Source: Octopus sinensis
Taxonomy: Eukaryota
NCBI RefSeq assembly: GCF_006345805.1
Contig: NC_042999.1
Coordinates: forward strand, 142,228,001 to 142,292,000
Direction: 5' to 3'
DNA length: 64,000 bases
The first letter of the stretch is position 1. Each line of letters starts with the position of its first letter. A program made the translations under genes and the position numbers. Below the pieces are notes generated by a model, which had not been told where the DNA came from, searched no databases, and was given only the letters and a program-made list of their open reading frames with translations. Positions 42,724-63,692 of the stretch are shown here, one piece after another.

Positions 42724-42776
42724 CCAATAAAAATGAGCTAATCCTGAGGAGATGAACAGGTATATAAACCCCTGGC
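42724..42776 (+). promoter_or_regulatory. Core promoter of AK exon 1A: CCAAT (42724-42728) and TATATAAA (42761-42768)
   Basis: Canonical spacing; no ATG between the expected TSS (~42790) and the start codon, which is in strong context ACT-ATG-G. Confidence 0.65.
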
Positions 42777-42843
42777 AAGCAGCTTTCGTTGCTGCATCTG
42801 ACAATTTTACCCCAATACTTGGAATATTAACTAAGTTATAACT

Positions 42844-42994
42844 ATGGCTGACGGAGACGAATTATTCGCACTTATTCAGGGTGCCAAGGACTGTCATTCT
42901 TTATTGAAGAAACATCTCACTAAGGAACGTTATGAAAAATTGAAAAATTTGAAGACCAAGTTTGGTGGTACTATTGCAGATTGCATCCGTTCAG
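42844..42994 (+). CDS. AK: Arginine kinase, alternative first coding exon 1A (MADGDELFALIQGAKDCHSLLKKHLTKERYEKLKNLKTKFGGTIADCIRS-G)
   Basis: Phosphagen-kinase N-terminal motif SLLKKHLT..GGT.ADCIRSG. 151 nt, donor AG|GTAAGA, phase 1 compatible with exon 2. Confidence 0.85.
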
Positions 42995-43574
42995 GTAAGA
43001 TACAAAAAATATTTGAAAAACTTTATTATTTTCTATGAATGAGTTAATGTACCAAAGAAAAAACAAATATATATTATGACAAAAAAAAAAGACATTAAAA
43101 TGTTAATTATTTTAATTTTAAAAATGTATTATTATGTATGTTAGTAAGTTTATCACTCTTGATATCATCCCACTTGAGACCACTCCAACATTGATGACAC
43201 GAAACTTCTAATTTCAAAGTGTTCATATTTAAGTTAAGACCTTTCATCATCATTTTACAATACGATTCGTTATTTTTTAAAATTCTTCTAAATTATTGAA
43301 TTTTGTTTTACAAAATTAAAATGCATAGGTAATTTGGTCCCAACAGGGCTAAATAAAAGTCTGTACATTTTAAACTGAAATTATGATGAAACTTTGGGTG
43401 GGTGGGGGAATGCAAAACAAAAAATAAGATTATGAAAAGTTTGAAATACCAAAGAAAGTTTACCGTTTTCTTTGAAAACCTTCATTATATCTAAAAGTTC
43501 AGGGATATAACAATGAAAACTTTTAAATAACCATATATATATATATCCAACTGCAGTTTATGCTCTTTGACTGA

Positions 43575-43810
43575 ATATTGCCTCTTACGTGCCACCGGCA
43601 CGGAAGCCAGTCAGCTGCTCTGGCAACGATCACGTTCGGATGGTGCTCTTAGCGCTCCACAAGCACGGATGCCAGCCATCGAATTTGATTTCGTTTTCAC
43701 TTGCCTCAACAGGTCTTCGCAAGCAGAGTTTAGTGTCCAATGAAGGAAAGGTACGCATAAGTGGGCTGGTTACACCCCTGGCATTTGGCCACGAGGTTAT
43801 GATCTCTCAA
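43575..43810. repeat. CpG-rich interspersed repeat/SINE-like insertion between exons 1A and 1B
   Basis: Abrupt GC/CpG-rich block in AT-rich sequence; family not determined. Confidence 0.45.
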
Positions 43811-44421
43811 GCACAACATATTTCCGAAATGCATATATGTATGAAAACGAGCTCAACCCCAGAGGTACTGTCATACGGACAATGTAGCCCATGTCTGAAC
43901 TTGCTGATTAATAACACATATTCCACATACTAAGCAACAAGAGAAGAAGCTGGCATTTATTAGCTGACTATCAAGCCTAACAAAGAGCTTTAACTTGATA
44001 GTTTTTTTTTTCTTTTAAAAACAAGATGTTTCGAGGGTTACATTATTCAACGTGTTTAACTTAGTGTACAGAGTAGCGCATTAAGCAAGCCCATGGTTTA
44101 AATTACGAGATCAAACAAAACCGGCACAATAATAATAATATTAACTATCTTTTCAAATCACTGAGTAGTTAATGAAAGTATCTTGTAACAGGGAATTTAA
44201 TTAAAAAACAAAAATAAGAAAAAAAAAATGTTCAAGTTCAGTGGTATATTTTGAACGAATGCGCAGCCGTGATTTTTTTTCAATAGATGCATACATATAC
44301 ATAAATAAATATATCAATGCGTGCTTTTATCCATCCATCTAACCATCAATACAAAAACATGATTTAAATGCATATACACTCAGTCACAAATACAATATCT
44401 CTCTCTCTCTCTCTCTCTCTA

Positions 44422-44454
<33 letters not shown>

Positions 44455-44649
44455 CTTATAAATAAATTTATAATGCCGAAAATTGGACAAATTGTCCATT
44501 ACCATATAATTTTTCACAATACACACGCAAATTTTTTTTTCGTTTACCCTTATTTATAAGTTGTTTATAATTTTAACCTTTAAAGATATTTTTTAATATG
44601 CTGGCCATTGATAAAATTTTTTTCCGAAAAAATTTTATCCTACATTAAA

Positions 44650-44682
<33 letters not shown>

Positions 44683-44769
44683 GTCATTGTATCGACCAGA
44701 ATATCAGATGTTGTTTATACATCGCTGGTCACAATGCACTTTCAATTCTTGATTGCTCCATTCTCTTCC

Positions 44770-46050
44770 ATCTCGTCTTAAATCGCTTAACTAAAACGGT
44801 TTCTGATCTCTTGGATGCCACTCGAGAATTGCTCAGATCCACCTTCTGTTTGTAAACCTTACATGTCCAGCTCAGCAGAACTTGTACATTCGGTATTCTG
44901 CGATCACATCTTTCATTCTCTTCGGTTCTCGAAATATAAAGACAAGATGGAAGGCGTTTACCGAAATAAAGGACGCGCTCAAACAGCCGCTGAATGGGGG
45001 GGGGGGGGTCAAGCCGTAGTTGCTGATGCGCAGATATGCGCTCGGGCAGCACTTCTCCAGTGTTTCGTTGACGGTGAGCAGGTGTAGTCGCCGTTTGGTA
45101 GGCTAGCTCTCCCACATCTCGCCTCTTTGACTGTGTTGCAAATCTGGATTAGGTGTACACTGAGGAGGAGCGCCTGGCACTTTGAGTGCCGTCAAGCACT
45201 CACAACCCTCTGCTGGTCAGGTAATGCGGTCGGTGGTAGTTCCACTCTAGTGTTTTATAGAGGGTTAGTGGAGAAAAAGTATGACGATGTTCTCGAGGAA
45301 GCTCTGGGCATCAACGAAGAAATTCCTGGTCTGTTCCGGAAGACTTTCGGGCCGGGGCCTGTGGATAACTTCCAGAAATCCCTAGCCTGGCAGTGCTACT
45401 GAGGGGCGCTGCCCGTTCGAGATAAACTTTACCGGCACGGAAGTTCCATTAGCCAAGCCTGTCCAAGGTGCACACAGAGCGATGAAACCATTCTGCACGC
45501 ACTCATCCAGTGCCCGAGCATTGCAGACCTGTGGGTTTATATCGAACACCTGTCGCGTGTAGGACGGATCTGGCTATCAGCTGAATCTATAGTGAAGATT
45601 ACCCCGCCACCCTCCTTTTGGGCGGGAAGGGCTTGCAATTTTTATTTGTCTGGTGGCTGTAACGAAAGAGGTAGTGTGCTAGTCACGCTTGAAAGGGCTA
45701 AAGACAGACTCTTTCCACTTTAGCGAAGCCCCCATAAACTTTTTCAAGTTTTACTTGAAAAGGAAAGTGAGGGTGGAGAGGGAAGTGTTGCCTTCTAGCA
45801 AATTTGTTGAAAGGTAGGTGAATGTTGAAAAAATGACCAGTATGAATGACCTATTTTGAGCATGCGCCTGTGAAAAATAAAAGAAGCGCTCTTACCCTGT
45901 TTGTCAGGCACCCTTGGCTTTTGTACGTTTTTCCACGAATAGCCTTGAAGCGCCTCCCCCATTGGGAGTTTTATTTGTTTGATTTTAACAATTTTTGTTT
46001 ATACGTTTTTAAAACCTGTTGTATCGTCCCATGTTGTTCTATGTAAGTCC
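44770..46050 (+). mobile_element. Tx1/L1-like LINE 3' fragment, decayed
   Basis: LAWQCY*GALPVRDKLYRHG..CPRCTQSDETILHALIQC (zf-RVT), related to the 31330-31920 fragment; stops and frameshifts. Confidence 0.85.
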
Positions 46051-46647
46051 TTGTGGTCAACAAAAGAATGAATTATTAATGCTGACAGTTGAAAGCAAGT
46101 TATATTCCTGTCGTTGTAGATAGAGCAACTACTAACACATTCTGATTGATTGCAAACGCCATTCAAAGTCACTTAAATAATCACAAAATATTGGTTTGTT
46201 TGACATAGTTACTGCAATCAATTGAATCTGTGAAATTTTAAGAGAAAGAACAGCGTAACAAATTTGAAAATCGATAATATTTAAAAATGTAAACGTAGTA
46301 CCATATATTATTTCAAACAAAACGTTATTTTAGATATCACTCCAAACAAAACGCTACATTAAACATTTCAAACAAAAAGTTAGTACGTAGACACATTATA
46401 AAGAAAAAGACAATTATTGTGAAATATTGGATTACTTTGCTGAAATAGCAAATTTCCATCAATATTTTCTATCAATGAAGGATCAAAATATTTTCAAGAG
46501 TTTCTACTACAGTACACGACCTTATATAGATTATTGGTAGTTATAGTTGATGTAATTTGAACTGAAATTGAGTTTCGTTTCATTGCAAGCAGACGGAAAT
46601 ATCGACTGTATCTATAAGAAGCGTAGCTAGAATGAGTACCGCCTAAA

Positions 46648-47040
46648 GCGCGAAATTTTTTTTTTTTTCTACGAGAGTTCCGGATCCCAGTTATGAACTC
46701 ATTTGCATACAGCCAACCAGAGCTCAACTATCAAACTAATTTATGAGCGCATAAAAGTGATGGGCAATAAGATAAGGTCATTTGGTTAACGAATGATCAT
46801 GCTTCTTTTCTCTTTTAATAATGCTTGTTCTTGTTCCAACTATGGCTGCCTCTCCGTAGTTAGTTGTGTTGTTCTAGCGTTGCTAGTACATCACCCTCTA
46901 CCCACATTTTCCCCATCCACATCTTTACCATATGGGACCCTAACAAAATGCGATAATAGGCATAACTTGGTTATCGGTCGACTTTACAACACCGTTCTTC
47001 GTCTTAAGTTTACTTGGTAGAGTGTGTTTGTTAACTTCGA
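46648..47040 (-). mobile_element. Partial second copy of the MULE-like MITE at 19-780, without the nested Tc1 MITE
   Basis: Reverse complement of ~460-780 continuing into ~100-190 of the first copy; only one TIR seen. Confidence 0.8.
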
Positions 47041-47619
47041 ATTTACGCATCTTTAGTAAATTTATATCTGGTACAAAGCAGAAAAAGTGTTTTTAAAAAT
47101 TCTAAGAACAGCATTCCATCCAGAAAACTGTTAATTAGAAAGAATTTGTGAAAATGTAAGGTATATTTCAAAATATTTTGAACAATGAAAGGTCGGGTGA
47201 AGATATACTCAATGGAATTGATAATCTATTGAGCAATAAATAATGGCTGTCGTTGGATGATTAGATGGCATAAACTCAGTTCCCCCCCCCCATGCATATT
47301 ATTTCATTTAAATGTAGTTGGATCAGATTGGAGTAAGATTAGCAAAATGCTTAGATTTTTTTTCCATGGAATACAGGACCCTAGATTATGCATATAAAAA
47401 AAAATTGTACTGACTGATTTTTACAGTAATGAACTAGAATCGCCACTGATAGATTTCGAACACCTATACACGGACACACATATTTAATGTGTGTTAGTAC
47501 ACATACACGCGCGCGCTTAAGATATATATACTCTAGGAACACTATATAAAGATAACAAACCATACTACTACCAACATATACCCTTTCATGTCACCCAGTG
47601 AGGTTGTATACATTATTCG

Positions 47620-47900
47620 GGCGGTGCTAACGGTTAGTAGTAGTGACGGTTGTAGTAGTACTATTAGTAGTGGTTGTAATAGTTTAGGTGGTAGTGTTTG
47701 ATGGCGGCAGTGGTGGCGTTGATGATACTTACTAGAAGTGGTAGTATTTAAAGTGGTGGTGGTGATGATGATTTTTTCATTATAGTAGTAGTAGTTGTGG
47801 TGGTGATTGTAGTAGTGGTAGAGGTTGCAGTAGAAAGGTAGTAATGGTTAATGTGTCTTGTAATAAAGGGTACTGGTAGTGGTGGTGGTGGTGGTAGTAG
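47620..47900. repeat. Degenerate (GTA)n/(GTG)n/(GAT)n trinucleotide tract
   Basis: Directly visible. Confidence 0.9.
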
Positions 47901-50900
47901 TAGTGCTGTCTTGCGATCAAGACCACTACCGCACACACACATTTCGATAATGTCAAATTATGAGGCAAACAACAGCAGCCTCCTTCACTCCCAGTTTTGT
48001 TGTTGTTTACGATCAAAGCCTTTCCAGTAGTGACTACCCTCCTTTGTTTTTTCTAATTTTTCTTTTTCTTAATTTCCATTTTCTATATCATCGACTGTTC
48101 AGTGTATGGGGGGGGGCGTAGTACTACTACTGGAGCATGTAATGTTAGATTCTCCATCCCACCCCGGACCAACTTGGAGTTTATCATTTTCAAAGGCTAC
48201 TCGCACGTGCATATATCAATGTGTGTGTGTGTGTGTGTGTGTATATTTATGAGTATATGCACGCGCACACACATACACAAACTATGTAAGCCAACTGTAT
48301 ATATATGGCTTGTACATGTGTAGGGAAGGTGATTAATCTGGCTAAAAAGTCGTTTGACCTTCACAAGCCTCGTCCCGCTCAGCTGTAAACTGAATTCTCA
48401 TTTCTTTCGACTTCTTTTTTTTTATTATTTTTAACATTTTGGTGTCCGTCAAATAATGATGTCGATGACATTGACAAAACCAATTTTGCCCACAGAACTA
48501 ATTCCAAAAATCGATATTTGGCATGCATATTAATGAATGTAATTCGATTATGTAAGGTACTTCGATAAACTGTCAGTTACATGCTTACAACGTAACTGGG
48601 CAATGACGTACATACATATATATGAACCGGTTTGTGAATGTGTATTTGTCTTATATGAGTGTGCTTCTTCCTATGTTTTCTTCGCTAGTTGTATATAACG
48701 AAAAAAATAAGATATCACACCAGGCGCGAACACACACACACGCACACGCGCGCGCGCATTCACATATACATACACACAGGTATATGCATTGGCAAACTTA
48801 TATTTACAAAGAAAAAGTACTCAGTTCATATAGTAAAGGGTCTATTTTATTAGAAGCCGAAACCTCTTAAATTATAACTGTTTTGTGTCGCCAACTAATC
48901 GAACGAGTCTAGAGAAGCAGCGTGACAACATATAAGCAAACATATTCCTAAACATATAAAAATATATGGTAAAACAAGATTTGATTGGTTGCCGACGAAC
49001 CAATAAAAATGTATTAAGTCATCTATTCCAATCCAAAAACACGAGACATTTTCCTGTCTTCAGTATTATTTGTGTAAAACACATAAAATCAAGAAACATG
49101 GCTTATAAATAAAGTTTCTGCTTTTAATGCTAAATGCTTTTTGTTTTCTTGTATGACAATTTTTCAGGGCATAACAACTCTCTCTCCTTAATAAATTATT
49201 TTAGCTTATTGGTAGTTTGAAATTCTCTTGTTGACAATTCCAAAAACCAGTTAGCTTGTCTGAGTGACAAAGTGGCACCTTCTAGTGCAGTTAGTATAGG
49301 TGGGGTGCATGATCTTCAATGGAACAAATATTTTTATAATTGCTTTAATCTCCCTGACAGGCATGTGGTAAGAAGTCTTCCTAAGAGTCAGAATGTATAT
49401 AAATATTGCAAGAGTCTTTTTCAAAGGAATTTTCAGTAAAACCTTTTAGAGCTTTTTGGTTTTGTTATTTGTATTAAAAAAAAAAATCTTAGCTTGATAG
49501 ACACATACTTCTAAGAGAGCAGATATTGGGGCTATTGTAAGCATGCATGCATACATACATATAATATGGTTTAACTGGCCGAAACTTCGAAGACGCTATA
49601 ATATTCTGGTTTAAGAACACACACACATGTATGTACCATAAAATGTTTTGTGTCGTCCTGCCTTACCACCTTACACAGAAAGTGAAAGTAAACAAGGGAA
49701 GTGTATGATATAGGTGACATAAAGCACAAAGGCTGAGCGAGACAGGAAAAAAAAAACAGAAAAATAAATCAAAAGATGTATTAAAGATGCTTATTCTATT
49801 AAACGGCAGCATTAGATTTAATTTTAAGATACTGCAAATGGTGAGAAAATAAATGAAATGCGAGAATGGAAAAGGAAAGACTATAAAAGCTACTTACATA
49901 TAAGTACTATATATATAATATATACATATATAGCTACACACACACATGTATAGATACGTGTGTATGTGTATTATGTGTATACATGTATGCTTGTATAAAT
50001 ACATGAATAGAGATCCAAACACTACCTAATTTTATTATGTGTGTGTGTGTGCATGTATACACAAGCATAGTTTTCAAATACATACCCATGTTTAAAGTAT
50101 GTGTATCTGCACGTAGAAGACAAATATGTTTATATTTATCGTATGTAAATGTATGCATATATTTATATTTATTGTATGCGAATATATATTTCTATGTATT
50201 ATACATACACAAACACATATTTAAATGTAAATAAGCAATAAAAATGCAATCATTTCTATACACAATATCTACTTAAATAAAATTATCGTTAACCCTATAT
50301 TTTCAATTACATGCGTAAATCTGAAACCTGAAATGCATTGGCATATACATATGTGGAAATAGATATACATGGATATACATATATGGGTATCTCTAAATAT
50401 ATATAGTTCAGTAGTTTGCCTCCGTGTGTGTTATATAAATCTCATACACACATAACTTCGCAGGTAAAATGTTAGATGCAAACTGCCTGGGAGGTGGGTG
50501 ATCTTCTCTAGTATTAAGAACCTACCCCCTTTAATACCAGTTCATTTAGTGTCGTTAGTGGAGTCCACGTTACAAGCATTCGAACCAGGTTTCTTTCTTT
50601 TTTTTTTTTTTTTTTTCTTCTGCAAATAACTTCTTTCCGAATTTCTCACTAGTTTATAGGGAAAACCTGAAAAAGGTCATTGGTGTTGCCCTTCATCCTT
50701 TAACTTAACCAGTAAATACATAAGTAGACGTAGGTGGGTGTGCACAGAGAATATATACATATAATATAATATAATTAAATATAATATATATAGACATATA
50801 CACACAGAGCGTTGCTAAAAAATCAAACTACACAAGACGTTGAAATCGTATCTACCGTTTCCCAAGCCGAGCATTGATAGAACGTGCATGATGTGTGCAT

Positions 50901-50914
50901 GACACAAGAATCAA

Positions 50915-50957
50915 CCAATCACAGTGAAGCCCAGTTAATGGGGTATAAAAGCCTGGC
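50915..50957 (+). promoter_or_regulatory. Core promoter of AK exon 1B: CCAAT (50915-50919) and TATAAAA (50944-50950)
   Basis: Canonical spacing; ATG-free leader from ~50975 to 51085. Confidence 0.7.
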
Positions 50958-51084
50958 TTTGTTGAGTGCAGACCACTGTCGCACCTTCTTACAGTTAGTT
51001 AAATCTATCTGTAGCTATCGGTTGTCCAGATACAACCACTTTCTGCCTTACACAGCTGCTTTTTTTTGCTCACAATCTAAGAAT

Positions 51085-51232
51085 ATGTCTGACCTTAAAG
51101 AATTGTGGGAGGCTTTGAAAAAGGTTGATAGTAATTCTCTTTTGAAAAAACATTTAACACCAGCCAGGTATGAAAAACTGAAGAACAAGAAAACTAAATT
51201 CGGAGGCACTTTGGCAGATTGTATTCGTTCTG
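51085..51232 (+). CDS. AK: Arginine kinase, alternative first coding exon 1B (MSDLKELWEALKKVDSNSLLKKHLTPARYEKLKNKKTKFGGTLADCIRS-G)
   Basis: Same N-terminal motif. 148 nt, donor TG|GTAAGC, phase 1; nearest first exon to exon 2. Confidence 0.92.
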
Positions 51233-54200
51233 GTAAGCTAAGAAAATGTTTAATAAATTGATATTATATCATTTTTTTCACATGCATTTAAGGTGTCTAG
51301 AATTTAATTAATGGGTTCTGAGAAGTTGTGACAGTTATTCTTTTACAATTGTCATTTTATATTTGTGATTTAAATAAAATATAATTGAAATATTAAAAGG
51401 ATATTCCTTCTTTCATAAGAAATATAGGTAATTTTACTGGTGTATCCGTTTTAAATAGCTTATTTAAATGATACACTTATCTAGCATCCAATCTACACAC
51501 ACATTGAATGCTGTAAAAGTGATTTAAATAATGACATCTGCATTTGAATACACACATACATGTACATATATACCAAATTGACGTTAACCGTTGACCCTCA
51601 ATAGATAATATACTCAATGTTTTGTGAAATAAAACTTAGCTAACAGGAATTTCAGTATTGCTGATTGTCGCTATTAAATATTAAATTATTTCGACTTTTT
51701 CCTTCTCGCATAAAATTTATTTTATTTCATTCATCAAAGTGTTACTATAACACAGAAGAAATAAATCTTTCCGTTATTTCATTGTGAAACTATTTAGTGT
51801 CAGTTTCAACTATCAACGCTGTTCTTTGGCAGTCGGGGTGGTGGGCTAACAAGAGAGAAATCCTGCTATCATCATGACACTAACGGTAGTCATTTATTTT
51901 TTTTACCGACAAACGTTCTTCTGTATAATCTGTGTACTTTCCTCACTAACAATATTTATCAACTGATTCACACTCAAATCTATTAGTAATGTGAATACAT
52001 TTTAAAATCGATCCAAAATCTCTGCTTTTTTTCCTCCAACAGCATTCCTCTCTCGTTTTCCATTCATTCTGCTATTAAAGGTTCTTGAACGCTGATAAAT
52101 AGTTGAAATATTTCTCTCTCATCAATAAATCTAAACAATAGCTGCTAGTTTCCTGCTTCTGTCTCCTCTCTTTCGACTTGCATCCTTTTTCTCTCATCTC
52201 CTTCCTCACCTGAATTTGCCTCTGTTAAAACTGCTATTTTAATTCATTCTCTATGTCAGCCTGAAAGATGACCTTAATTTTCAATCTGTCTGTCAGTCAA
52301 GATGACTATGATTTTTATCTTACTTCGACAAACTTATTTGCCATCCTCGTATTCTTTTTCTTCAGAATATTCTTTGCCTATTGTTTATTTATATTATTAT
52401 CCGACAACTCTGGAAAATAAAAATCGCTATTATAAAAAGAGAGCAGCGGAATCGCTAATTTAACACGGTTCTTTGTTTTGAGTTCAATTCCTTCTTGACA
52501 ATATTTCTCTGCGGGGTCGATCAAATTTCAATCTACTACTGGTCGATGATATCAACTTGCCCCTCATCTCAAAACTGCTCTCTTTGTTCCTCAGTCAAAA
52601 ACAATTATTATTATTGTTAAATCCCTTCAAGGTCAACTTAGCTTTTCGTCTGTATGGGGTCGATAACTTAGTAACTAAGGTCGATTTAATCGATTAATCA
52701 CCACCACCACCCGGAATTGGTGGCCTTACCCCTAATCAGAACTAATTATTGTTATAACTAAATCTCCGTGTAACGAAACTGATTTCACATTTAATGAGCA
52801 TTTTATCCTATTTCGAAATTATTGATTCAAAAAAACAAATTCAACTGAAACCTTATGGGCCTCGTATACCTATTTATCTTGTATTTTTGTTGTGGGATTT
52901 ACGTTCGGCGAATATACACTGCCAAACGGATAATTTTATCTATAACGCCTTTATTGCTCATTAGTGACCTTTAAAAATTGCAATTTCGTGTATGTTGGTA
53001 GATAGTAATATAACACATTCAAGTTGCATGGAGTGTTAGCTGGCAGTTGAAATGAGAAGTAGCTCTATCATGGAAGAAGTGTGGAGGTTGTGACTGTCGT
53101 TCTTTTCCTCATGACATAAGTTGTTTAGCACTAGGTCAGCCTTGATCGATTAAACCTTTGATCAAAAGCATTCCACTTACGAACATCCCATTACCTTTCC
53201 AGTATGCAGGGAACTGAGGGTCATATCCATTGTGTGCTTTTCTTACATGATGGAGTGAGATTTGAGGTAAATTTGGCTGCCATTTTTAGCTCACGTAGCC
53301 TCCACATAGCGGCTATCTCGGAGTGAATAACATTAATGCAGCGAAATGACGTCCAAACAGAATTGAAACCAGATCATTGGCTAGGCTCATGTTTTACCCA
53401 TTTTAATTTTAGGTAATGTTTTGGGCATTTAAAAAAAATAATCTGGCTATGTTTCTTAGGTTTTAAGGACTCCTAGTCGTGATTTCAAACTAATTTGTTA
53501 ACTGACCTTTAAATCAAATTTCAATTTAAAAGAAATACGTTTAAAATATATTTGTTTTGTTGAAAGTGATGTCCTATACTTAAATAGGACATCACTTTCA
53601 CTTTTGTTGTCACAGTCGAGTGATTAAGTGATGTCTGAGAAATGATCACCTTTAGTTCTTAATACATACATTTCTGTGACCCATTGTTTAAAGTTTCAAA
53701 TTTATCCTGTAAATGACGTGAAAACTAGCTTCCATTCTTTTGAATCCTACAAATCGATGTTTTTGACATAATTGAAAAAAAACAATTCCTTTTTGCTCTC
53801 TGAATACTTATTAAATCAACGTGACCTAGATAATTTAACAAGATGCACAGAATTGCGAATATTCGGCATTTAGTTTTATCGCAAGTGTTCTCATCTTTTA
53901 ACTTCCTCTCTTCTTTTTTTTTTTTTTTCAGTATGTCGTCCTATTATTTTTTTATCATTCTTGATAGTTGGTGACTGTTAAATCAGTGCAGCCTGACTGT
54001 TTCCAGTTTAAATTTAGTCTTGCTCAATATAAAAATCAGCTGAGATATGAAATGTGAATGATAGAAGGGAAGCTGTATGAATAAGCCGGCAATCCTTCGT
54101 TTGATAGACGTAAAATGTCGGAAAACAAAAATAAAACCATACTAAAAATTGTCACTCTGTTAACCATTTTTCATTTCGGGGAAAGATTTTCCATACTTTA

Positions 54201-54444
54201 TTTTTGTGGAAATAAGACTTGTAAACTCTTGTCTGGTAAGAGTGAAATTTCCATGTTTTGACACGATATTTACTTTGGATGAAACTCCATGTCTCTTGAT
54301 GTATTGTGTGATGTGTTTGTCAGCTTTTTTTCTCCAGGAACCAAACGTTAGCGATCCATGTCTTAATATTGAGACAATCTGACAAGATTAGATTTATTTA
54401 CTATGCGCATGAGAAAAGAAAAAAGAATCACTACTATAATGTAT

Positions 54445-54776
54445 AGGCGCAAGAGTGGCTGTGTGGTCAGTAGCTTGCTTACCACCCACATGGTTCCAGG
54501 TTCAGTCCCGGACAAGTGTCTTCTACTAGAGCCAACTGAGTGGAAGCTGACGGAAACTGAGAAGCCTGTCATATATATGTGTATATGTTTGTCCCCCCAC
54601 CTTCAACATCGCTTGATAACCGATGCTGGTGTGTTTACGTCCCCATAACTTAGCGGTTCGGCAAAAGAGACCGATAGAATAAGTACTAGGCTTACAAAGA
54701 ATGTCCAGGGGTCGATTTGCTCGACTAAAGGCGGTGCTCCAGCATGGCCGCAGTTAAATGACAAACAAATAAGAGT
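54445..54776 (+). mobile_element. SINE family A in AK intron 1
   Basis: tRNA-like head TGGCTGTGTGG..GGTTCAGTCC plus family A body with an internal deletion. Confidence 0.85.
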
Positions 54777-57167
54777 ATAATGTATTTATTTTAATGGGTT
54801 TTAACTGACATTATGGCAGCACAACTTATTTAATGAATAGCATTATATATAAGTGAAACATTCGTTGTATTCAATATCTTAAAACGTGTGTGTGTTCTGT
54901 TAACTTTTTTCCTGGGTTGTGTTTAAGTGGTCTCTTTAATTTGACTTTTCACTGCAACATACATAGTAACATAAGTTAGGGATATCATATTTGAGTACTT
55001 TCGTTTTTGTAATGGCGATTCATTGTCGACAGAACATTAATTTTACTTTTTAGGTGTAGGTCAGGTGTAGTTCTTGCCTGTAACTAAAGTGACAGTGCTT
55101 CAGATAGTCCCAACGTAGTTCCAATTTTTCCTTTGTAGCCATTTTAATATGAGTGTGAACTTGATTGTTCACTTTCTTTTTAACTGTTCAACCTTAATGT
55201 GTTGCTTGATCGAACAGTTAACCAGCAGCGTTCCATCTGTAACCATGCCGTCAATTTCTTTTTCAAACTACATTGTTACTATTTATGTTTTTAAGGCGGC
55301 AGAGAGATGTCGACCGATCTCATTGAGGCTCTGTCGTTGTTTTAAGTTTTGTAAGAAAATTGAGTACCTGAATAAAACAATAGGTTATTCAATAATGTAA
55401 AGAATTAACTTTTTACTCTATATATCTGGAAAATATGAAAGGCTGATTCAATTTTTTAAAATTAATTACAACTGCAAATTTTGTACATAAACGAAAATTG
55501 GATTGAACACTACAGGCATTGATAGTTTTGGCTGAAAGAAACTAATGTTTTCATTATTGAGGACATTACTTTCATTGTCTTTGCATGGGTTTTCTGCAAT
55601 AAAGGCAATTTATTCTTATTTAATTTTCTTTTAACTTCGTCCTTGGTGAAAGTTGCCTTTTCGTAGCTTTATTGTCGGGCAAATTATGTACCGATTCACA
55701 TAAACGTCTTTTTAAACAAACCAATTAGTTTTAAAATGCAGAATAGTGGACAAAACATTGTCTATTTCAAACATCGTGGGATTTTCTCGTTTTATAGATA
55801 GTCGGTTCTGCGGATAATCTGGCAAATAAAGCCGAACATGTCTAATGTCCATAAGATAAATGCTTTAAATAGGGAAAATTGGGTGGGCTTTCAGTTGATC
55901 ACAAAGTGAAGCATCGAGTAAAAGATCGTGGTTTTCAATTCGTTTGTGGGCACCTTGGACAACTGTCTTTTTGCTGTATCCTGGACTTTCGAGTGAGTGG
56001 ATTTGATAGACGGAAACAGTAGAAACCTTGGATGTACTTTCACTTTATGATCTTCAAACGAATGATCGCCAACAATTGAATAGAAATAACTCCTCTTCCT
56101 CACATTTTCCAAACGATTTGTTTGTACTAGCTTTCTTGGTCTTTAGACTTTGTGATGGATAGTGGAAATATAAAGCTGTGGTTGAATTCCAGGTTAGTAT
56201 TTTATGGTTGGAAAAAATTGAAATGAATTAACTACAGAAGTGGGGATGCAATATGTTGAACATTTAATTGATATTAAAGAGTGTTTAGGAGAATTAATGT
56301 AAATTAGTAATCATCCAGGAGTTTTTGTTTATAATGTGTAGAATCCCTAGTAAACAGCCAAACAATGGGTCAATCTCCTAATTGTGTAACTTGAACCTTG
56401 TTTTTAAATTGTAACTATTTTGTCACTAACCTCTTGGGAACGACATTTTATAATCATCTAATTTGGCGGGGGGGGGGGGGGTCTCTACAAGTATATAAAC
56501 ACACGTTTATATACTTTGCATTGCGATCCTAATTCATATTACGGCTATAGTTAACTCGAAATAGGGAAACCAGAATATACTATCAATGATAGATATTTTA
56601 TATACTATTGACTGTACCAGATTATTCTGGAATAAGCGGTGACGAGTGGTTTTTAGCGAAAGCGCAATCAAAATTAGTCTAAAATGTTTCTTTTGAAAAA
56701 TTCAAGCCGTAAAAGTACAGACCTTTGGGGTTTTTTTTCTTTTGTAATTATTTTGATTTTCTTATCATAGCTCATAATTTCGGGCCTGTTTTTCCCTCTG
56801 GTTTTCTGTCTGCGTTACGGTAGAATGAAAAATCGCCTCTTATCTATTATTAAAATATTCATAGGATGTTTGTATTGCCAATTTTTATTTTCCTGTTGAT
56901 ATTCCCAATGTTTCCTTGAATAGTGATGTCATAAGATGCATCGTTTATATCTTTACTTAAGTAATTTTTTAGTACTCTATTGAACTCTCATATTTCTTGT
57001 AGATTTACTTTCGAATTGAGACTAAGAATTTGAAGTTTGCTATATAAATTGCCAATACACTTTTGTCATACACTTTTGTACTAGGTGTTCAAATTCATGC
57101 TTGAGCAAACCTTTACAGATATATTTTTCCGTATAAATTCTTGACCATATTTTTCTTAATTTTCTAG

Positions 57168-57427
57168 GTTGCAAAAACCCTGACAGTGGTGTAGGTATCT
57201 ACGCTAGTGATCCTGATGCATACACTGTATTTGCTGAAGTCCTTGATGCCGTTATCATGGACTACCATAAAATTGATAAAGTCACCCACCCAGTTCCAGA
57301 CTTCGGTGATGTCAATAACTTGAACATCGGTGATCTTGATCCATCTGGTAACTTGATTGTATCTACACGTGTCCGCGTAGGCAGGAGCCACGATAGTTTT
57401 GGCTTCCCACCAGTTCTTAAGAAAGAG
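57168..57427 (+). CDS. AK: Arginine kinase exon 2 (G-CKNPDSGVGIYA...STRVRVGRS...VLKKE)
   Basis: Acceptor TTTTCTAG|, donor GAG|GTATAT, 260 nt. Carries the guanidino-specificity region DSGVGIY typical of arginine kinases and the RVRVGR phosphate-binding arginines. Confidence 0.97.
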
Positions 57428-57532
57428 GTATATTGCTTTACATTTATCTAAAATAGAGCATTATTATCTTGGTAGCTAATATTTAGTAATTTGAAGGTAT
57501 TCAAACTTTTAATGAAAGAGTGTAATGTTTAA

Positions 57533-58615
57533 CCCTTTCGTTACCAAACCGCCCAAAGCCGCCCAAACAAAATTTTGGTTTATGAAACCAAACCGCCCAA
57601 AGCCGCCCGAATTTACCTATTCATATTTAAATGAGAATATCAGAGCAAATCTCTTCAGTACATTCGTGAAAACACGTATTATACTTCGTAAACAGTTCAA
57701 CTACAGTTTTGTACAATAATCGAAGTGTAATTTTAATTCCGTGAATTTTGGGAGATTTTTTTCCGAAATTTGTTCCTATTGTATTTTCAAAATTTGTAAT
57801 TCTGACAAAAAATGGATACGAATTTCATTATATCAAGCAGCGAGTCAGAATTCGAAGGATTTTCTACTGAAGACCTTCATAAATCTAACTCTATGACTGA
57901 AAAAAAAAAGCATGTGGTATTTGATAATGAATCTGATGTTTCATTTTCCGAAAGTGAAAACAGTGAATCTGAGATCTCCGACAGCGATAAAGAAAACGAA
58001 TTGGCACCTGAATGGAGTGAAAATTTAAAAACTGTTTCTTTCGGTGATTTCTCTGAAGAAACTGGACCAAGCCACAGACTTTCCCAGAAGAGTAAAGCCT
58101 TAGACTATTTCTTTTTACTTTTTCGAATGAGCCTATTTGAAATCATTACAGCGGAGACGAACCGTTACGCTAAACGTAAACAAAGCAAAAGAAACGATAG
58201 TTTGTGGTTTCCCTCAACCTTAAATGAAATTAAGACTATTTTGCCATAAATATTATTATGGGTATCAGAAAGTTACCCAGAATAACAAATTCTATCGTAA
58301 AATTTTGTTATATACCCAATTGAATATTAGCTAATAACCCATTTTCTATAACGATGTTTGAACAAAATTTTAATTTTATATTTTGTGGAATTTACCTGTA
58401 TCTACCTGCAATTAGAGTCACTTTGTAACAAAAATTATAGTATAGAATTGGTTGAGAATATTTCATTAAATTATCTTCCAAAAATCAGATTGATATATCG
58501 ATAAATAAAAAAGTTATAGTTGTTTAATGAAACCAGACTAAATTTATGATTACGTTAGAAATTAATTGAAACACATAAGGGGTGTAATTTGGTCAGAAAT
58601 ATAGTAACGAAAGGG
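57533..58615 (+). mobile_element. Internally deleted piggyBac element in AK intron 2
   Basis: TTAA at 57529-57532 and 58616-58619; TIR CCCTTTCGTTAC / GTAACGAAAGGG. ORF 57812-58249 has an acidic N-terminus and LDYFFLLF..ETNRYA..W.P.T..EIK; after a frameshift it continues IIMGIRKLP. Catalytic DDD region is absent. Confidence 0.93.
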
Positions 58616-58926
58616 TTAAATGACTTTTTGCCATGTTAAGATCCATATATAATAATGCTTGCTTTATTAAAAATATTTTCTTGGGTTGCACTTAGTGTCT
58701 GCAATTAAGAAAAATTTTTGTTCTAAAATTGTACAAACTCAAGATTGGGATTAGATAATTTTCATTCAGGAATTGAATATTAGCTGAATATTTGTCTAGA
58801 TGAACTCTTTACTTCATCAGTGTTTATCTTGTAAAAAGTAAATTTATTGATATTTTAAAGTTGTTTCTTGTAGATCTCTTTTAAATCCTTAGAATTTTAT
58901 TATTTAAATGATTTTATTTTCAATAG

Positions 58927-59075
58927 GATCGTGTTAAAATGGAACAAGTATCCGTTGAGGCTTTGAAATCCCTTGAAGGTGAATTGGCTGGTAGCTATTA
59001 CCCCCTCAGCAACATGACTCCTGAAGTTCAGAAGCAACTGACTGATGATCATTTCCTCTTTAACGACTCTGACAG
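58927..59075 (+). CDS. AK: Arginine kinase exon 3 (DRVKMEQ...GSYYPL...DDHFLFNDSD-R)
   Basis: Acceptor TTTTCAATAG|, donor AG|GTTAGT, 149 nt, phase 0 to phase 2. Confidence 0.97.
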
Positions 59076-59275
59076 GTTAGTTAAAGTTGTGATTGCGCTA
59101 TTCTGTTGGGATTTCATCATTTTAAAAATTCTACTTTAATTGTGCCTTAATTACTGCTATTCCTCCTCTTGTCATATGTGACTCAATAACTTAGAGGGAA
59201 AGATTAGAATATTTTTGGTCTGCTGATATTGAAGACATATTCACTTTGCTGTTTACATTTTGCAATTTGTAAATA

Positions 59276-59674
59276 AGGCGCAGTCATGGCTGTGTGGTAA
59301 AGTAGCTTGCTAACCAACCACATGGTTCTGGGTTCAGTCCCACTGCGTGGCATCTTGGGCAAGTGTCTTCTGCTATAGCCCCGGGCCGACCAATGCCTTG
59401 TGAGTGGATTTGGTAGATGGAAACTGAAAGAAGCCTGTTGTATATATGTATATAGATATGTATGTGTGTTTGTGTGTCTGTGTTTGTCCCCCTAGCATTG
59501 CTTGACAACCGATGCTGGTGTGTTTACATCCCTGTCACTTAGCGGTTCGGCAAAAGAGACCGATAGAATAAGTACAGGGCTTACAAACAATAAGTCCCGG
59601 GGTCGATTTGCTTGACTAAAGGCGGTGCTCCAGCATGGCCGCAGTCAAATGACTGAAACAAGTAAAAGAGTAAA
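59276..59674 (+). mobile_element. Full-length SINE family A in AK intron 3
   Basis: tRNA-like head, CTTGGGCAAGTGTCTT core and tail all present. Confidence 0.9.
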
Positions 59675-61176
59675 GTGTTGCAGATCACAGGTTGACAATT
59701 AGTTGATTACTGGTACAGTTTCTTACACCAAGTGACAATGGAGTCTGTGTGGAACAAAATCTCATTAGACCTCATCGGTGAAGGATAAAAATATTAGCAA
59801 GGAAAGAAGATTACTAGTCATGGGTATTCTGCTTTCTTTGCTGATATATCCTTCATTGAGATAAACAATATACACTGTGTTTGACTGACTTCCACATAGT
59901 TTCTAAACTTTCTCATGAAATGTATTGGTCACCTTTATAACTTTGATAGAAGATGCTCAAATTATGCAATTGGTTCAACCCAAAACCTTGTGATTGCAAA
60001 GTGAACTTCTTAACCAAACAACTATACATTGCAACCGATGGAAATGGAACTCTATAATGTCTTTTAAATACAAAAAGACAAGATGTTTACATTTGTCTAT
60101 ATGTAGTGTTAGCTCAAATCATCGTTTAATAGCTGTTTTCCATGCCAGCATGTGTACAGACAGATGTAAACAGTCTTTTGATATATTCTGCAGTGTAGCA
60201 TTGAAACAAATTGACTGATGCACCAGTAATTTATTCATCAAACTAGATGAAAATACATAATATGCCAATTAGTCTGATTTGCTTTAGCCTTTAATAATAA
60301 TGGACTTGTAGGCAGTTTTCTGGGAACAGTTGAAGAGGGTGCTCAGTCACTGAAATCCAAATTGAATTGAAACTGCTCTGATTAATCCCTCAAAGTTTGT
60401 ATACCAAGATATTTAGTGTTTACATCTGTCTATACATTGCATATTGTCAAAAACTCTTTAGATATATTCTAAGGTACGGTGTAGCGTAATTGGAAGGAGT
60501 TACATAAAACTCCCTGCTCTTCAGCGTAAAATAACTTTCAATAGCATATAATTTCTAATGAATATTTTGATACTCCTTGCAAGTAAGGATGGTCCTCATC
60601 ATTAACAAATGAAATATTTATGAGCTAATTACTTTCGATATGACTGAGAGATGAATGTGTTATCAGACTATTTAACATGTTGGGTAAATATGTGTTTTAG
60701 TGTATAAATAAAATGTCTAAAGGAACTATGGCTTGTATCCTTGTTTTAGTTTTTTCAAATTCTGGGTTATATATGGCTGGGGGAGATTGAGTAAAAATCG
60801 CAAAGAAAAGAACAGTGGGATGTACTGTAAGGGAAGAAAACAAAAAACCCAGTATGTTAATAATATTAAGTTCATAGGTACAAGGATTTGAAGGGCTAAG
60901 ATTGCACAACTATCTTTTGGAAATTTTTTTATTTCTGAAAGTGAAATAAGTAGATGAGTGTATGTATGCTTATAAATGTATTTACTTCAAGTTTTTGTTT
61001 GTTTCATTAAAACTGTACGTGGTTTTGATAAAACATTTTGTTTCTGTTGGACAAGAATTATGAATATCAAGAAACCTACATTGCTGCTTTGAATTCTTTT
61101 ATTCTTCTTGCTTGTAATCTAGGCATGTACAACCACCTTTATATACCATTGCAACTGATCCATTATTACATTTCAG

Positions 61177-61342
61177 ATTCTTGAAGGCAGCTAGTGGTTA
61201 TGATGACTGGCCTACTGGCAGAGGCATCTACTTCAGTGCCAATAAGACCTTTTTGTGTTGGGTCAATGAGGAAGATCATCTTAGGCTGATTTCCATGCAG
61301 AAGGGTGGTAACTTGGGTGAAGTCTACAAGAGATTGGTCAAT
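61177..61342 (+). CDS. AK: Arginine kinase exon 4 ([18 protein letters not shown]...[17 protein letters not shown]...LVN)
   Basis: Acceptor TTTCAG|, donor AAT|GTAAGT, 166 nt; catalytic NEED motif. Confidence 0.97.
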
Positions 61343-63119
61343 GTAAGTATCTGAATTAGAATTCTTCACTTTCTATACATATAAAAGTTTTCTTTGCTTG
61401 TGATTTCCTCAAGATGAAACTGTTTATCAGGAGAGGATTGACTGTTTTGGATTAGGGAATATTTTTTAAAACTTTCATTTGTTGAGCATAGTTTAATGGT
61501 AGATTCAATATTGGTCAGAGTTGGATGTACTAGATGTTTATATATTAGTTAAATGTTAAGTAGATCTCAATTTTCCATAATCTAACAAATGATTCTTACA
61601 ATTTAATATAACTCAATTCATAGCAGCTGTCCCAGTCTTTTCATGCTAATAGTTAGACCTTGATTTCAATATTTTCCTACTATTCAGAACATGTTGTTTG
61701 TTAAAGTTAAATAGATTGTCTATAGTTCTGTTGCTTTCTGTATCTTGTCGAAACTAACTTTATTTTGGTGTTTGTGAAACTCTCCTTTCATAATTTAATT
61801 TAAATCACTTACTTCAAGCTTTTTTTTTTTTTTTTTGCTAATGATTTGTAATTACCAGTAATTTTATTATCGGTCATCTTTTTCATGCTCGTATCATTTA
61901 TAAGGATTACATTTGATGGGTGATAGTCTGTTACACCAAACCTAAAAAAGCTTTTTCATAGCTGGAATGCATCTGTTCATAGGACTAATTAGAGAGTAAA
62001 CATTTAGTGCTCTTAATGTTTAAAAATTACCCTATGGAATTAAAACTTCATTTTGTTTGTATGGATTCATTTTACAAATTCTAAACTATTATCTAAAGCT
62101 GATATCTCTTGGTTCCATTAGCTTCTGATTCTCTTCATCCCATTTCTAGTAACACTTATGAAGACTTAGTTCCTCTTTCATACTTTCCACTTCAAGTTTG
62201 CTGCTTAGTTTTTTTTTTTTTTTTTTTTTTTTGTTTTTTTAAATATGTTTCAATATTCCATTATCATGCATCATTCTTGGTTGAGGTCCTGCTACAATGG
62301 CCTTTTGACAAATTTTCAGTTGTCCTCCACAATATGGTAAAGTTTTACTAATTAAAAGTGAGGATTTCATACCAACTCTCTCTCTCTCTAATGGTAATTT
62401 TAATTCTACTCTTCTAGTTCTCAGTATACACTACCCACTAATTTGTTAAATAATTCTATGAAACTTAGAAAAATTCATTTAATTAGTCTCATAAACTTTC
62501 TGTTAAGGAATATACAATTTAACTGCTTCATTTAACTGCCATTTACTTTTAAAGATATGAATATGCTGAAATAACATATCAAAGTAAATTTAAGTATTTA
62601 GAATTTGAATAGTTATTTATTTTTTAATCCTTTTAAAAAAATTTGTTTTTTTTATACTTTCTCAATCACTTTATAAACATTGCCAAGAGGTGGTTCATAA
62701 AAGAAGACTAAGTTTATACAATATAGTAGTATCTGTTAAAACTTGGTTTAGCCTCAGGCCAGCCTGAAAAGTATTCCAGCTATGATCATACTGTTGTATA
62801 GTGTGTCCCTGCTTCTTGATGTATATTTAGTTGCTTTTAACATGGTAAAGTAGAGGTCCCCTCAACTTATATTGGTTAGGTTTTAGATTCTGGATGGTTT
62901 AAAACAAAAAAGACCAGTGGTTTCTTCATTTACTGTCTTGAAGAGTATTCCCTAATCTTAAATTGAGATTTCTTTCAAGATAAGTTTCTGTGACCTCCCA
63001 TTCATATGAATAATCATATCTTTCGAACCAATTAACTTAAAACTTAAGTAAAACAGAATTCTTTTTAATTGCATATTTTTATGTCCATGTTTTATATTTA
63101 ATCAATCCTCTCTTTCAAG

Positions 63120-63300
63120 GCTATCCATCAAATGGAGAAGAAACTGAAGTTTGCAAAGAAAGACAACATGGGTTACTTGACATTCTGCCCAAGCAACTTG
63201 GGTACCACCATGAGAGCTAGTGTGCATATTAAGATCCCTAAGCTTTCTCAGAGACCAGACTTCAAAAGTATCTGCGACAAATACAACCTCCAGGCCAGAG
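63120..63300 (+). CDS. AK: Arginine kinase exon 5 (AIHQMEKK...LTFCPSNLGTTMRASVH...LQAR-G)
   Basis: Acceptor CTCTCTTTCAAG|, donor AG|GTAAAA, 181 nt; active-site CPSNLGT. Confidence 0.97.
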
Positions 63301-63410
63301 GTAAAAGATTTTTCCTTCTTACATTTTTTGAAATTTATTGAGATAGAAAAATTTTTAGAACCTTTTAATTTTAAATATTTAATATTTATTAATTTTTATT
63401 TCAATTTTAG

Positions 63411-63553
63411 GTATCCATGGTGAACATACAGAAAGTGTTGGCGGTGTCTATGATATCTCTAATAAACGCCGTATGGGTCTCACAGAGTATGAGGCTGTCA
63501 CTGAAATGATGAGGGGTGTCAATGAGATCATTCGTGAGGAAACCAGCAGTTAA
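63411..63553 (+). CDS. AK: Arginine kinase exon 6 ([24 protein letters not shown]...EETSS*)
   Basis: Acceptor TTTTAG| after a 110-nt intron; TAA at 63551-63553. Total CDS is 1047 nt with exon 1B (348 aa) or 1050 nt with exon 1A (349 aa). Confidence 0.97.
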
Positions 63554-63570
63554 ATTTTTTTCAATTGTAA

Positions 63571-63692
63571 AATAAAAATGTATCCGGGATTAGATAACAA
63601 GATAAGTCTACTATGTTAGAAGTTCTGTTTGAAAAATCTCAGATACCAACTTTTAGACTGTAAAAGGCTTTTGCCATGCAGGTGAAAATAAA
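63571..63692 (+). terminator. Candidate polyadenylation signals AATAAA (63571-63576, 63687-63692)
   Basis: Hexamers downstream of the stop; T-rich sequence follows the second. The site actually used is unknown. Confidence 0.5.

Follow-up and report, generated by a model that had tools for sequence, protein, structure and literature searches.

The window analysed here, a stretch of 64 kb of Octopus sinensis DNA, contains a single arginine kinase gene with two homologous first coding exons, 1A and 1B, each preceded by its own putative core promoter, as detailed below.

42724-42768, + strand: putative core promoter of exon 1A, read directly, with a CCAAT box at 42724-42728 and a TATA box, TATATAAA, at 42761-42768
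42803-42994, + strand: exon 1A, with 5'UTR from at least 42803 and coding sequence at 42844-42994, according to the start of a spliced contig and the translation
50915-50950, + strand: putative core promoter of exon 1B, read directly, with a CCAAT box at 50915-50919 and the TATA box TATAAAA at 50944-50950
50975-51232, + strand: exon 1B, its start at about 50975 predicted from the position of the TATA box, with coding sequence at 51085-51232
57168-57427, + strand: exon 2, the common acceptor for 1A and 1B, encoding the remainder of the N-terminal domain
58927-59075, + strand: exon 3, from reading frame, tblastn and transcript contig
61177-61342, + strand: exon 4, from reading frame, tblastn and transcript contig
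63120-63300, + strand: exon 5, from reading frame, tblastn and transcript contig
63411-63702, + strand: exon 6, coding up to a TAA stop at 63553, with 3'UTR to at least 63702 according to the transcript contig

Exon 1A is coding from the ATG at 42844 to 42994 (151 nt, i.e., 50 codons plus 1 nt) and exon 1B from the ATG at 51085 to 51232 (148 nt, i.e., 49 codons plus 1 nt); both terminate in ...DCIRS followed by the phase-1 donor G/GTAAG, and exon 2 starts at 57168 with an AG directly 5' of it. The ATG-to-ATG distance of 8241 bp agrees with the spacing of about 8.2 kb given in a first-pass annotation of this DNA, and the coordinates as well as the open translations are in accordance with its description of two ATG-initiated exons with phase-1 donors that join a single exon 2 in frame, resulting in an open arginine kinase of 349 aa for 1A plus exons 2-6 and of 348 aa for 1B plus exons 2-6. 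When both isoforms were compared with both strands of the window by tblastn, two exon-1 matches were found, with a cross-match between 1A and 1B at E = 2e-14, and one match each for exons 2-6. Exon 2 thus exists in one copy and, as had been stated before, no similar sequence lies between 1A and 1B. The same search returned no further kinase-like sequence below E = 1 on either strand of the 64 kb, and scans of the window with Rfam and for tRNAs gave no matches. There is no coding exon upstream of 1A or 1B, each of which opens with a 5'UTR and an ATG behind its own putative promoter.

With respect to the product, Pfam recognises the N-terminal domain PF02807 at residues 16-80 (E = 1e-27) and the catalytic domain PF00217 at residues 141-347 (E = 2e-77), and matches to arginine kinases of known structure lie at E = 1e-117 to 1e-124. 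Isoform A agrees at 100% identity with XP_029633356.1, which is annotated as "arginine kinase Oct f 2 [Octopus sinensis]", and it belongs to the same 90% cluster as Oct f 2 of Amphioctopus fangsiao. On the grounds of sequence similarity the product is accordingly assigned to the arginine kinases of the phosphagen (guanidino) kinase family as an orthologue of Oct f 2. Both 1A and 1B begin three residues before helix 1 of the N-terminal domain of the kinase, with no added extension, AlphaFold2 predicts identical helices with equal confidence for both N-termini, and the catalytic as well as the substrate-binding parts fall in the shared exons. The 1B leader was also considered as a mitochondrial presequence, which was judged to be a composition effect of translating a pyrimidine-rich leader.

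Comparing the two first exons, 34 of 51 aligned residues are identical and 17 differ, mainly in helix 1 and the next loop of the small N-terminal domain. For the last 33 residues, the identity of 29/33 reported before has to be corrected to 28/33, or to 29/34 if the split Gly codon is included, and the accompanying count of synonymous divergence, with different codons at 17 of the 28 identical residues, was reproduced. The differences that consistently separate all 1A from all 1B sequences are few (F/Y vs W in helix 1, E vs A, and L vs K), and at the three fixed diagnostic positions 1B carries the majority residue of 98 non-cephalopod sequences; it is thus 1B that has retained the residues more common among molluscs. 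Class-specific residues, e.g., TPARY...KK in 1B and AKDC...LK in 1A, are kept across octopods and decapodiforms.

The order 1A, 1B, exon 2 is also present in O. vulgaris, O. bimaculoides, Argonauta hians and Sepia pharaonis; reading frames are intact and the donors are G/GTAAG in four octopods and one cuttlefish, and 1B orthologues are intact in four other cephalopod genomes. The pN/pS ratios amount to 0.07-0.11 for 1B and 0.2-0.45 for 1A, as compared to 0.06-0.16 for exons 2-6, which both isoforms share. Between 1A and 1B, pS is 0.76-0.94 and synonymous sites are saturated, and in the last 33 codons of 1B only 1-2 non-synonymous changes separate octopus from cuttlefish, with synonymous sites being saturated. 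Both first exons are under purifying selection, 1B being constrained to the same degree as the remainder of the enzyme and 1A evolving two to four times faster. The shared order, the pN/pS values below 1 and the saturated synonymous sites therefore corroborate the proposal of an old tandem duplication of exon 1 with purifying selection on both copies, and the duplication is older than the split of octopuses from cuttlefish and squid. In addition, two doubts raised by the first-pass annotation itself can be set aside: 1A is intact, and not lost or degraded, in the cephalopod genomes compared, and five independent assemblies show an identical layout, so that a collapsed arginine kinase paralogue is excluded.

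The CCAAT and TATA boxes of 1A are invariant in alignments with O. bimaculoides, Argonauta and Sepia pharaonis, and those of 1B are conserved in O. bimaculoides and Argonauta, Sepia having a CCAAT box together with a degenerate TTAAAAG. Between octopus and Argonauta only the exons and proximal promoters can still be aligned, the respective blocks being 42682-43020 for 1A and 50906-51259 for 1B, and the 1A transcript contig begins 35-42 nt downstream of the 1A TATA box. According to local alignment scores, the nucleotide similarity of the two promoters is not above that of shuffled sequences for the full region and is marginal for the core (17/500), where a motif TATA...CCTGGC is shared. Of the suggested tandem duplication of promoter plus exon 1, it is thus the exon part that stands; for the promoter, where similarity does not exceed chance, it is the shared CCAAT/TATA geometry that suggests a duplication together with the exon.

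At the RNA level, the Logan RNA-seq contig SRR12472755_790 (L002), spanning 42803 to 63702, joins 42994 directly to 57168 and is thus spliced from 1A to exon 2, and it matches exons 2-6 of this window at 98-100% identity, which removes the concern that no reads might connect 1A with exon 2. No octopus RNA with a 1B-exon 2 junction was found in the protein database with either an N-terminal query or a query of 1B leader plus exon, the 1B matches there being genomic read-through fragments only (P0059, P0231, P0232). The support for the use of 1B in octopus is therefore indirect and comes from a retrocopy, public gene models and the 1B-type mRNAs present in cuttlefish and squid, these mRNAs and the retrocopy both showing 1B joined to exon 2. 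In O. vulgaris, a processed pseudogene (OX597818.1) is colinear with 1B and exons 2, 3 and 4, to which it is 87.5% identical. The exon-1 part of this pseudogene scores 110 against 1B and 44 against 1A, and it was copied from an mRNA in which 1B was joined to exons 2-3-4. In S. pharaonis a 1B-type cDNA was obtained by 5'RACE (AKS26488.1; PMC5427814), and a JGI metatranscriptome contains one intronless 1B-type transcript. As for the public gene models, O. vulgaris (CAI9720215/6), O. bimaculoides (A0A0L8H9E4/A0A0L8H9P1) and S. pharaonis (CAE1233396/8) each have annotations for the two isoforms, and RefSeq has the 1A isoform alone in O. sinensis and O. bimaculoides.

Taken together, these data make it very probable that O. 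sinensis has one arginine kinase gene whose two alternative promoters are each equipped with a paralogous first exon of their own. Each promoter would drive a 5'UTR, codons 1-50 and the first base of Gly51; in transcripts from the distal promoter 1A would be spliced to exon 2 and 1B removed inside a 14 kb intron, and in transcripts from the proximal promoter 1B would be spliced to exon 2. Since both first exons have a donor and no used acceptor, the isoform would be chosen at transcription initiation, the choice of promoter presumably acting as the isoform switch, and the products would be kinases of 349 and 348 aa with identical catalytic bodies and differing N-terminal 50 residues. The purpose of this arrangement might be separate regulation according to tissue, stage or load, whether or not the proteins also differ slightly in function.

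Alternatively, the duplication might be regulatory only and provide two expression programmes, with amino-acid differences that are functionally neutral. This is possible, if somewhat doubtful: the location of the catalytic and substrate-binding parts in shared exons, the identical predicted folding of both N-termini, the small number of positions consistently separating 1A from 1B and the conservation of both core promoters as separate islands are all in line with it, whereas the class-specific residues kept in each exon across octopods and decapodiforms and a constraint on 1B that equals that on the catalytic body point to isoform-specific protein constraint, albeit without proving a functional difference.

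That 1B is instead translated from farther upstream, resulting in an N-terminally extended isoform (397 aa in public models) with, e.g., a targeting peptide, is improbable. Upstream of the 1B ATG, no stop interrupts the frame over 56-68 codons in octopus, Argonauta and Sepia (3-14 for 1A), with a pN/pS of 0.41 between octopus and Argonauta as compared to about 1.0 in the other two frames; one squid transcript product has a 34-residue upstream extension (P0206), Aplysia and Gigantopelta each have one first exon with a long extension, and the N-terminal exon of Drosophila ArgK1 gives mitochondrial targeting (PMC13215054). However, octopus has a sole in-frame ATG farther upstream (50939), which overlaps with the conserved TATA box and should therefore be located upstream of the start site, and the open frame continues through the promoter, where such openness consequently arises without coding; by chance an open frame is expected at about 0.08 per lineage. 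Moreover, the bias among codon positions (6/7/12) falls short of significance, the extension peptides show no conservation between octopus and cuttlefish, and the upstream ATG of squid is likewise not conserved in Sepia. It is hardly credible that one of the first exons is no more than a dead relic, or has arisen in assembly from a collapsed second arginine kinase gene, as might be read from the missing octopus RNA contig with a 1B-exon 2 junction and the 1A-only RefSeq annotations, given that the layout recurs in the five assemblies, that a transcript links 1A to exons 2-6 of this very window, that the last 33 codons of 1B are nearly free of non-synonymous change between octopus and cuttlefish in the face of synonymous saturation, and that a 1B-derived retrocopy as well as 1B-type cDNAs exist.

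An arginine kinase gene with paralogous first exons has counterparts in other molluscs, as the RefSeq isoforms X1/X2/X3 reveal arrays of two or three first exons in Aplysia californica, Gigantopelta aegis, Babylonia areolata and Ruditapes philippinarum. Like in octopus, these are homologous tandem first coding exons ending in ...DCIRSG in phase 1 before a single exon 2, and some gastropod first exons bear the 1A-type signature; yet exon number and order differ, the 1A-like exon being proximal in Aplysia and distal in coleoids, and the long N-terminal extension of one first exon in both Aplysia and Gigantopelta has no equivalent in octopus. In non-cephalopod sequences the residues of the 1A type occur together (Fisher p ~0.002, uncorrected for relatedness), and the coleoid 1A profile gives Gigantopelta X2 and Aplysia X3 scores that are 23-33 bits above those from the 1B profile, a qualitative result only, as the 1B profile contained three incomplete rows. 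In a neighbour-joining tree of 32 exon-1 peptides (51 columns, 500 bootstraps) the support of deep nodes is 1-21%, so that this tree cannot date the duplication beyond the coleoids. It is a tentative and rather unlikely reading of these sequences that 1A and 1B are the cephalopod remnant of a pan-molluscan first-exon array that predates the split of cephalopods and gastropods (more than 500 million years), with the classes kept for distinct roles and an extended exon for targeting. The 1A class may then be defined by L[F/Y] in helix 1, F at -21 and L at -15, and the 1B class by LW, Y and K, respectively, and the extended gastropod exon, possibly along with an upstream-initiated 1B, may serve subcellular targeting by analogy with Drosophila ArgK1. 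The low-support tree of 51 columns and the unlike exon order of Aplysia and coleoids speak against it.

Cephalopod muscle and nerve have arginine kinase as their main energy buffer, and Oct f 2 arginine kinase is a registered food allergen. The form present in most cloned cephalopod cDNAs is 1A. Biochemical, structural and allergen studies have used whichever cDNA had been cloned, namely clones of the 1A type for octopus, Sepiella and Sepioteuthis and of the 1B type for Sepia pharaonis, with their status as two isoforms of one gene being unrecognised; its recognition prevents confusion of isoforms with species differences or paralogues, and the two-first-exon structure also accounts for over-long database models of 397-402 aa. 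Furthermore, 1A and 1B offer a clean natural system on the contribution of the first 50 residues of a phosphagen kinase, and they open no long-standing question. A literature search found no paper on alternative first exons of molluscan arginine kinase and none containing the isoform accession numbers, in line with the earlier remark that this exon switch seemed undescribed; this holds for papers but not for databases, to which the layout is not new because annotations of both isoforms exist for O. vulgaris, O. bimaculoides and S. pharaonis. As alternative promoters with their own first exons are common in animal genes and both octopus isoforms are already contained in public gene models, the novelty of this ordinary gene design is modest.

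In comparison with known systems, the octopus gene shares with the general alternative-promoter design two donor-only first exons with their own putative core promoters, a common exon 2 and a choice presumably made at initiation; unlike in that design, the two first exons of octopus are homologous coding paralogues, either of which supplies the same structural element. As tandem homologous exons of matching length (151 and 148 nt) and identical phase (1) that encode the same element, they therefore resemble a mutually exclusive pair placed at the 5' end of the gene, although they are not internal exons with acceptor and donor that are chosen by the splicing machinery. In the shrimp Neocaridina denticulata, AK1 and AK2 reportedly differ in the N-terminal exon of one gene (a finding ascribed to Iwanami et al. 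in 2009), which, in an arthropod lineage, would be of independent origin. Drosophila ArgK1, finally, likewise combines one catalytic body with alternative N-terminal exons, one of which supplies a short peptide for mitochondrial targeting ahead of the enzyme (PMC13215054). In contrast, neither 1A nor 1B places a targeting peptide upstream of the kinase fold, and the octopus exons encode the first 50 residues of the enzyme itself in two paralogous versions.

With respect to its anatomy, the arginine kinase gene comprises two homologous first coding exons, 1A and 1B, and five exons common to both:

42844-42994, + strand: exon 1A coding sequence, 151 nt from the ATG, ending ...GATTGCATCCGTTCAG before a phase-1 donor, GTAAGA
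51085-51232, + strand: exon 1B coding sequence, 148 nt from the ATG at 51085, ending ...GATTGTATTCGTTCTG before a phase-1 donor, GTAAGC
57168 (start), + strand: exon 2, preceded by TTTTCTAG
58927-59075, + strand: exon 3, GT-AG introns
61177-61342, + strand: exon 4, GT-AG introns
63120-63300, + strand: exon 5, GT-AG introns
63411-63553, + strand: exon 6 coding sequence, GT-AG intron

Joined to exons 2 to 6, either first exon gives an uninterrupted protein (isoform A, 349 aa with 1A; isoform B, 348 aa with 1B) with an N-terminal (residues 16-80) and a catalytic (residues 141-347) phosphagen kinase domain, and isoform A is identical at every residue to XP_029633356.1, 'arginine kinase Oct f 2 [Octopus sinensis]', so the window comes from O. 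sinensis. A tblastn search with both isoforms over both strands of all 64 kb matched exon 1 at exactly two places (cross-match E = 2e-14) and each of exons 2 to 6 once; between the two first exons and upstream of them, no further kinase-like sequence scored below E = 1. The first-pass annotation had put the identity of the last 33 residues at 29/33; it is 28/33, or 29/34 when the split glycine is counted, and its observation that different codons are used at 17 of 28 identical residues holds.

Exon 1A belongs to the same gene as exons 2 to 6. In a 1240-nt RNA-seq contig from run SRR12472755 (L002), positions 42803-42994 are joined directly to 57168, which is the 42994^57168 junction that the first-pass annotation had asked for, and the contig continues through exons 3-6 as far as 63702, matching the window at 98-100% identity. 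Its 5' end lies 35-42 nt 3' of TATATAAA at 42761-42768.

For exon 1B, the 51232^57168 junction was not found in any RNA contig from octopus, and the protein database searches returned it only as genomic read-through fragments. Nevertheless, four independent lines point to its use, namely a retrocopy, genome annotations, a cloned cDNA and a metatranscriptome contig. The retrocopy is an intronless, stop-riddled stretch of O. vulgaris OX597818.1 (L008:13960-14535, with in-frame stops) colinear with 1B-exon 2-exon 3-exon 4 at 87.5% identity, the exon-1 part of which scores 110 against 1B and 44 against 1A; it is a processed pseudogene that goes back to a 1B-spliced mRNA, and the 1B-exon 2 junction was therefore once formed in germ-line cells of an ancestral octopus. 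In the gene set of O. vulgaris this pseudogene appears as a 158-aa 'arginine kinase' (P0002). As to the annotations, both isoforms are present as products of one gene in O. vulgaris (CAI9720215.1, 1A; CAI9720216.1, 1B), in the UniProt entries of O. bimaculoides (A0A0L8H9E4 and A0A0L8H9P1) and in S. pharaonis (CAE1233396.1 and CAE1233398.1). The S. pharaonis sequence cloned by 5'RACE (AKS26488.1; PMC5427814) is a 1B-type cDNA, and a marine metatranscriptome contig of 1339 nt (L005) encodes, without introns, a squid kinase of the 1B type. Cloned cDNAs of the 1A type come from Sepiella, Sepioteuthis, 'O. vulgaris' and Amphioctopus, and of the transcript-derived sequences listed as members of the decapodiform cluster, ten belong to the 1A type and three to the 1B type. 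Of the cloned sequences, Q9NKV5/BAA95609.1 (P0189), labelled Octopus vulgaris, differs at many positions, spread over its full length, from the protein encoded by the O. vulgaris and O. sinensis genomes, and its N-terminus appears by eye nearer to Amphioctopus fangsiao Oct f 2; its source animal may perhaps have been another octopus species.

The order 1A, 8.5-11 kb, 1B, 3.7-8.3 kb, exon 2 is common to O. vulgaris, O. bimaculoides, Argonauta hians and Sepia pharaonis, and in all four genomes both exons keep an unbroken frame from the ATG to ...CIRS and the donor G/GTAAG. Since octopods and Sepia pharaonis share this order, the duplication is older than the octopod/decapodiform split, which published clocks place at ~250-300 million years. 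By Nei-Gojobori counts, pN/pS is 0.06-0.16 in the shared exons 2-6, 0.07-0.11 in exon 1B and 0.2-0.45 in exon 1A, and the last 33 codons of 1B differ between octopus and cuttlefish by only 1-2 replacement changes, with synonymous sites saturated. Within species, pS between 1A and 1B amounts to 0.76-0.94, so the two exons have not undergone gene conversion recently.

Octopus and Argonauta introns are not alignable, in contrast to the exons and the ~160-180 bp that precede each first exon (blocks 42682-43020 for 1A and 50906-51259 for 1B), and CCAAT and TATA boxes are kept ahead of both. Apart from this CCAAT/TATA arrangement and a shared TATAAA..CCTGGC motif, the two promoters are no more alike than expected by chance; that the promoter was duplicated together with exon 1, as proposed in the first-pass annotation, is nonetheless reasonable to infer. 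Two non-coding blocks 400-700 bp upstream of 1A (42158-42208 and 42333-42444) show 78-84% identity with Argonauta hians amidst sequence that is not alignable, and are candidates for distal elements that regulate the 1A promoter. Since each first exon appears to have its own promoter and donor and no acceptor in use, the isoform would, from the anatomy of the gene, most likely be fixed at transcription initiation.

The arrangement may serve separate regulation, a functional difference in the N-terminal helix, or both. Isoforms A and B differ at 17 of the 51 aligned exon-1 positions, most of which fall within helix 1 and the loop that follows, and the exon-1 peptide carries a net charge of +3 in isoform A and +6 in isoform B. 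AlphaFold2 models (pLDDT 91.8 and 90.4) have equal local confidence and predict for both isoforms helices at 4-12/13, 19/20-23/24, 26/27-32/33 and, beginning in exon 1 and crossing the exon 1/2 junction, 43/44-52/53. The catalytic residues lie within the shared exons, and the differences consistent across all coleoids are few: F/Y vs W in helix 1, E vs A, and L vs K before TKFGG. That the arrangement is purely regulatory, the helix difference having no functional role, is possible, if somewhat improbable. Because the majority state among 98 non-cephalopod relatives at the diagnostic positions is that of 1B (W 49, K 60, Y 50), we infer that 1B is the conservative and 1A the derived copy. Tryptic peptides such as ADGDELFALIQGAK and DCHSLLK distinguish isoform A, and ELWEALK, VDSNSLLK and HLTPAR isoform B.

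A further reading, an N-terminally extended 1B isoform, arises from the 1B leader (50884-51084 here, and its orthologues in L001, L003, L004 and L006), where the frame is open into the kinase ATG in every cephalopod examined, with 56-68 open codons in octopus, Argonauta and Sepia as against 3-14 upstream of 1A. For each lineage the probability of such an open frame by chance is ~0.08. In the kinase frame pN/pS is 0.41, vs ~1 in the other two, a coding-like pattern that is weak and non-significant. The upstream in-frame ATG shares bases with the conserved TATA box in octopus and Argonauta; in Sepia it is found immediately 5' of a TATA-like element. We consider an extended isoform very unlikely. 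The open frame accounts for the 397-402 aa database models of isoform B, which in our opinion probably begin too far upstream.

The window also contains the following transposon-derived and repeated sequences:

57533-58615, + strand: piggyBac-type non-autonomous element of 1083 bp in intron 2, with terminal inverted repeats and TTAA duplication
2742-3134, - strand: mariner/Mos1-type HTH_48 fragment (Pfam E = 2e-5)
35337-36044, - strand: reverse-transcriptase fragment, RVT_1 (E = 8e-17), adjoining a 66-bp tandem repeat at 35847-36082
about 36254-37585, 54604-54772, 59496-59665: dispersed repeat of ~170 bp, several copies

The piggyBac-type element is bounded by 12-bp terminal inverted repeats (CCCTTTCGTTAC...GTAACGAAAGGG), is flanked by a TTAA target-site duplication at 57529-57532 and 58616-58619, and contains a 145-aa ORF (57812-58249) that resembles the N-terminal part of piggyBac transposase and has no Pfam match at 1e-3. 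As O. vulgaris (L001, ~24947) and O. bimaculoides (L003, 27155) both have the exact empty site, GTTTAAATGAC, the insertion is recent, in the O. sinensis lineage or individual. Copies of the ~170-bp repeat lie inside the kinase gene, at 54604-54772 in the long intron that precedes exon 2 and at 59496-59665 in intron 3.

Multiple first exons are also found in other molluscs. Aplysia californica has three alternative ones (L007: 3001-3156, 29455-29868 and 31944-32102) before one exon 2, Babylonia areolata one gene with two exon-1 copies, and the Ruditapes RefSeq isoforms differ in exon 1 only. Gigantopelta aegis has three copies, of which the unannotated one (L009:13144-13332, ...VDELWGKLKKGSNCHSLLKKHLTQQRFDKLKGLKTKFGGTLADCIRSG then gt) sits between two annotated first exons and exon 2 and is unused by RefSeq isoforms X1 and X2. 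The 1A signature occurs in some gastropod exons, and 1A residues co-occur outside the cephalopods; however, the exon order of the Aplysia array differs from that of coleoids, and a tree of 51 exon-1 columns does not resolve the branching. A common origin of the molluscan arrays is possible, though less likely than not. A GC-richer genomic contig (L011:591-741, Logan ERR13913672) contains a first exon, MSDLASLWKRLRENASKSLLKKHLTPDRYEKLKNRKTKLGGTLADCIRSG followed by gtaag, with a strong 1B-type score; if it truly derives from Nautilus or another early-branching mollusc, the 1B class would be older still.

Genes with alternative promoters, each with its own first exon, follow a standard design, and public gene sets already include both isoforms of the octopus enzyme; in the literature searched, no description or analysis of an alternative-first-exon arginine kinase was found for cephalopods or other molluscs. 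A similar arrangement was reportedly described in the shrimp Neocaridina by Iwanami et al. in 2009. In Drosophila ArgK1, too, alternative N-terminal exons are attached to a single catalytic body, and one of these exons targets mitochondria (PMC13215054). However, the Drosophila exon adds a peptide, whereas the octopus exons replace one another as paralogues.
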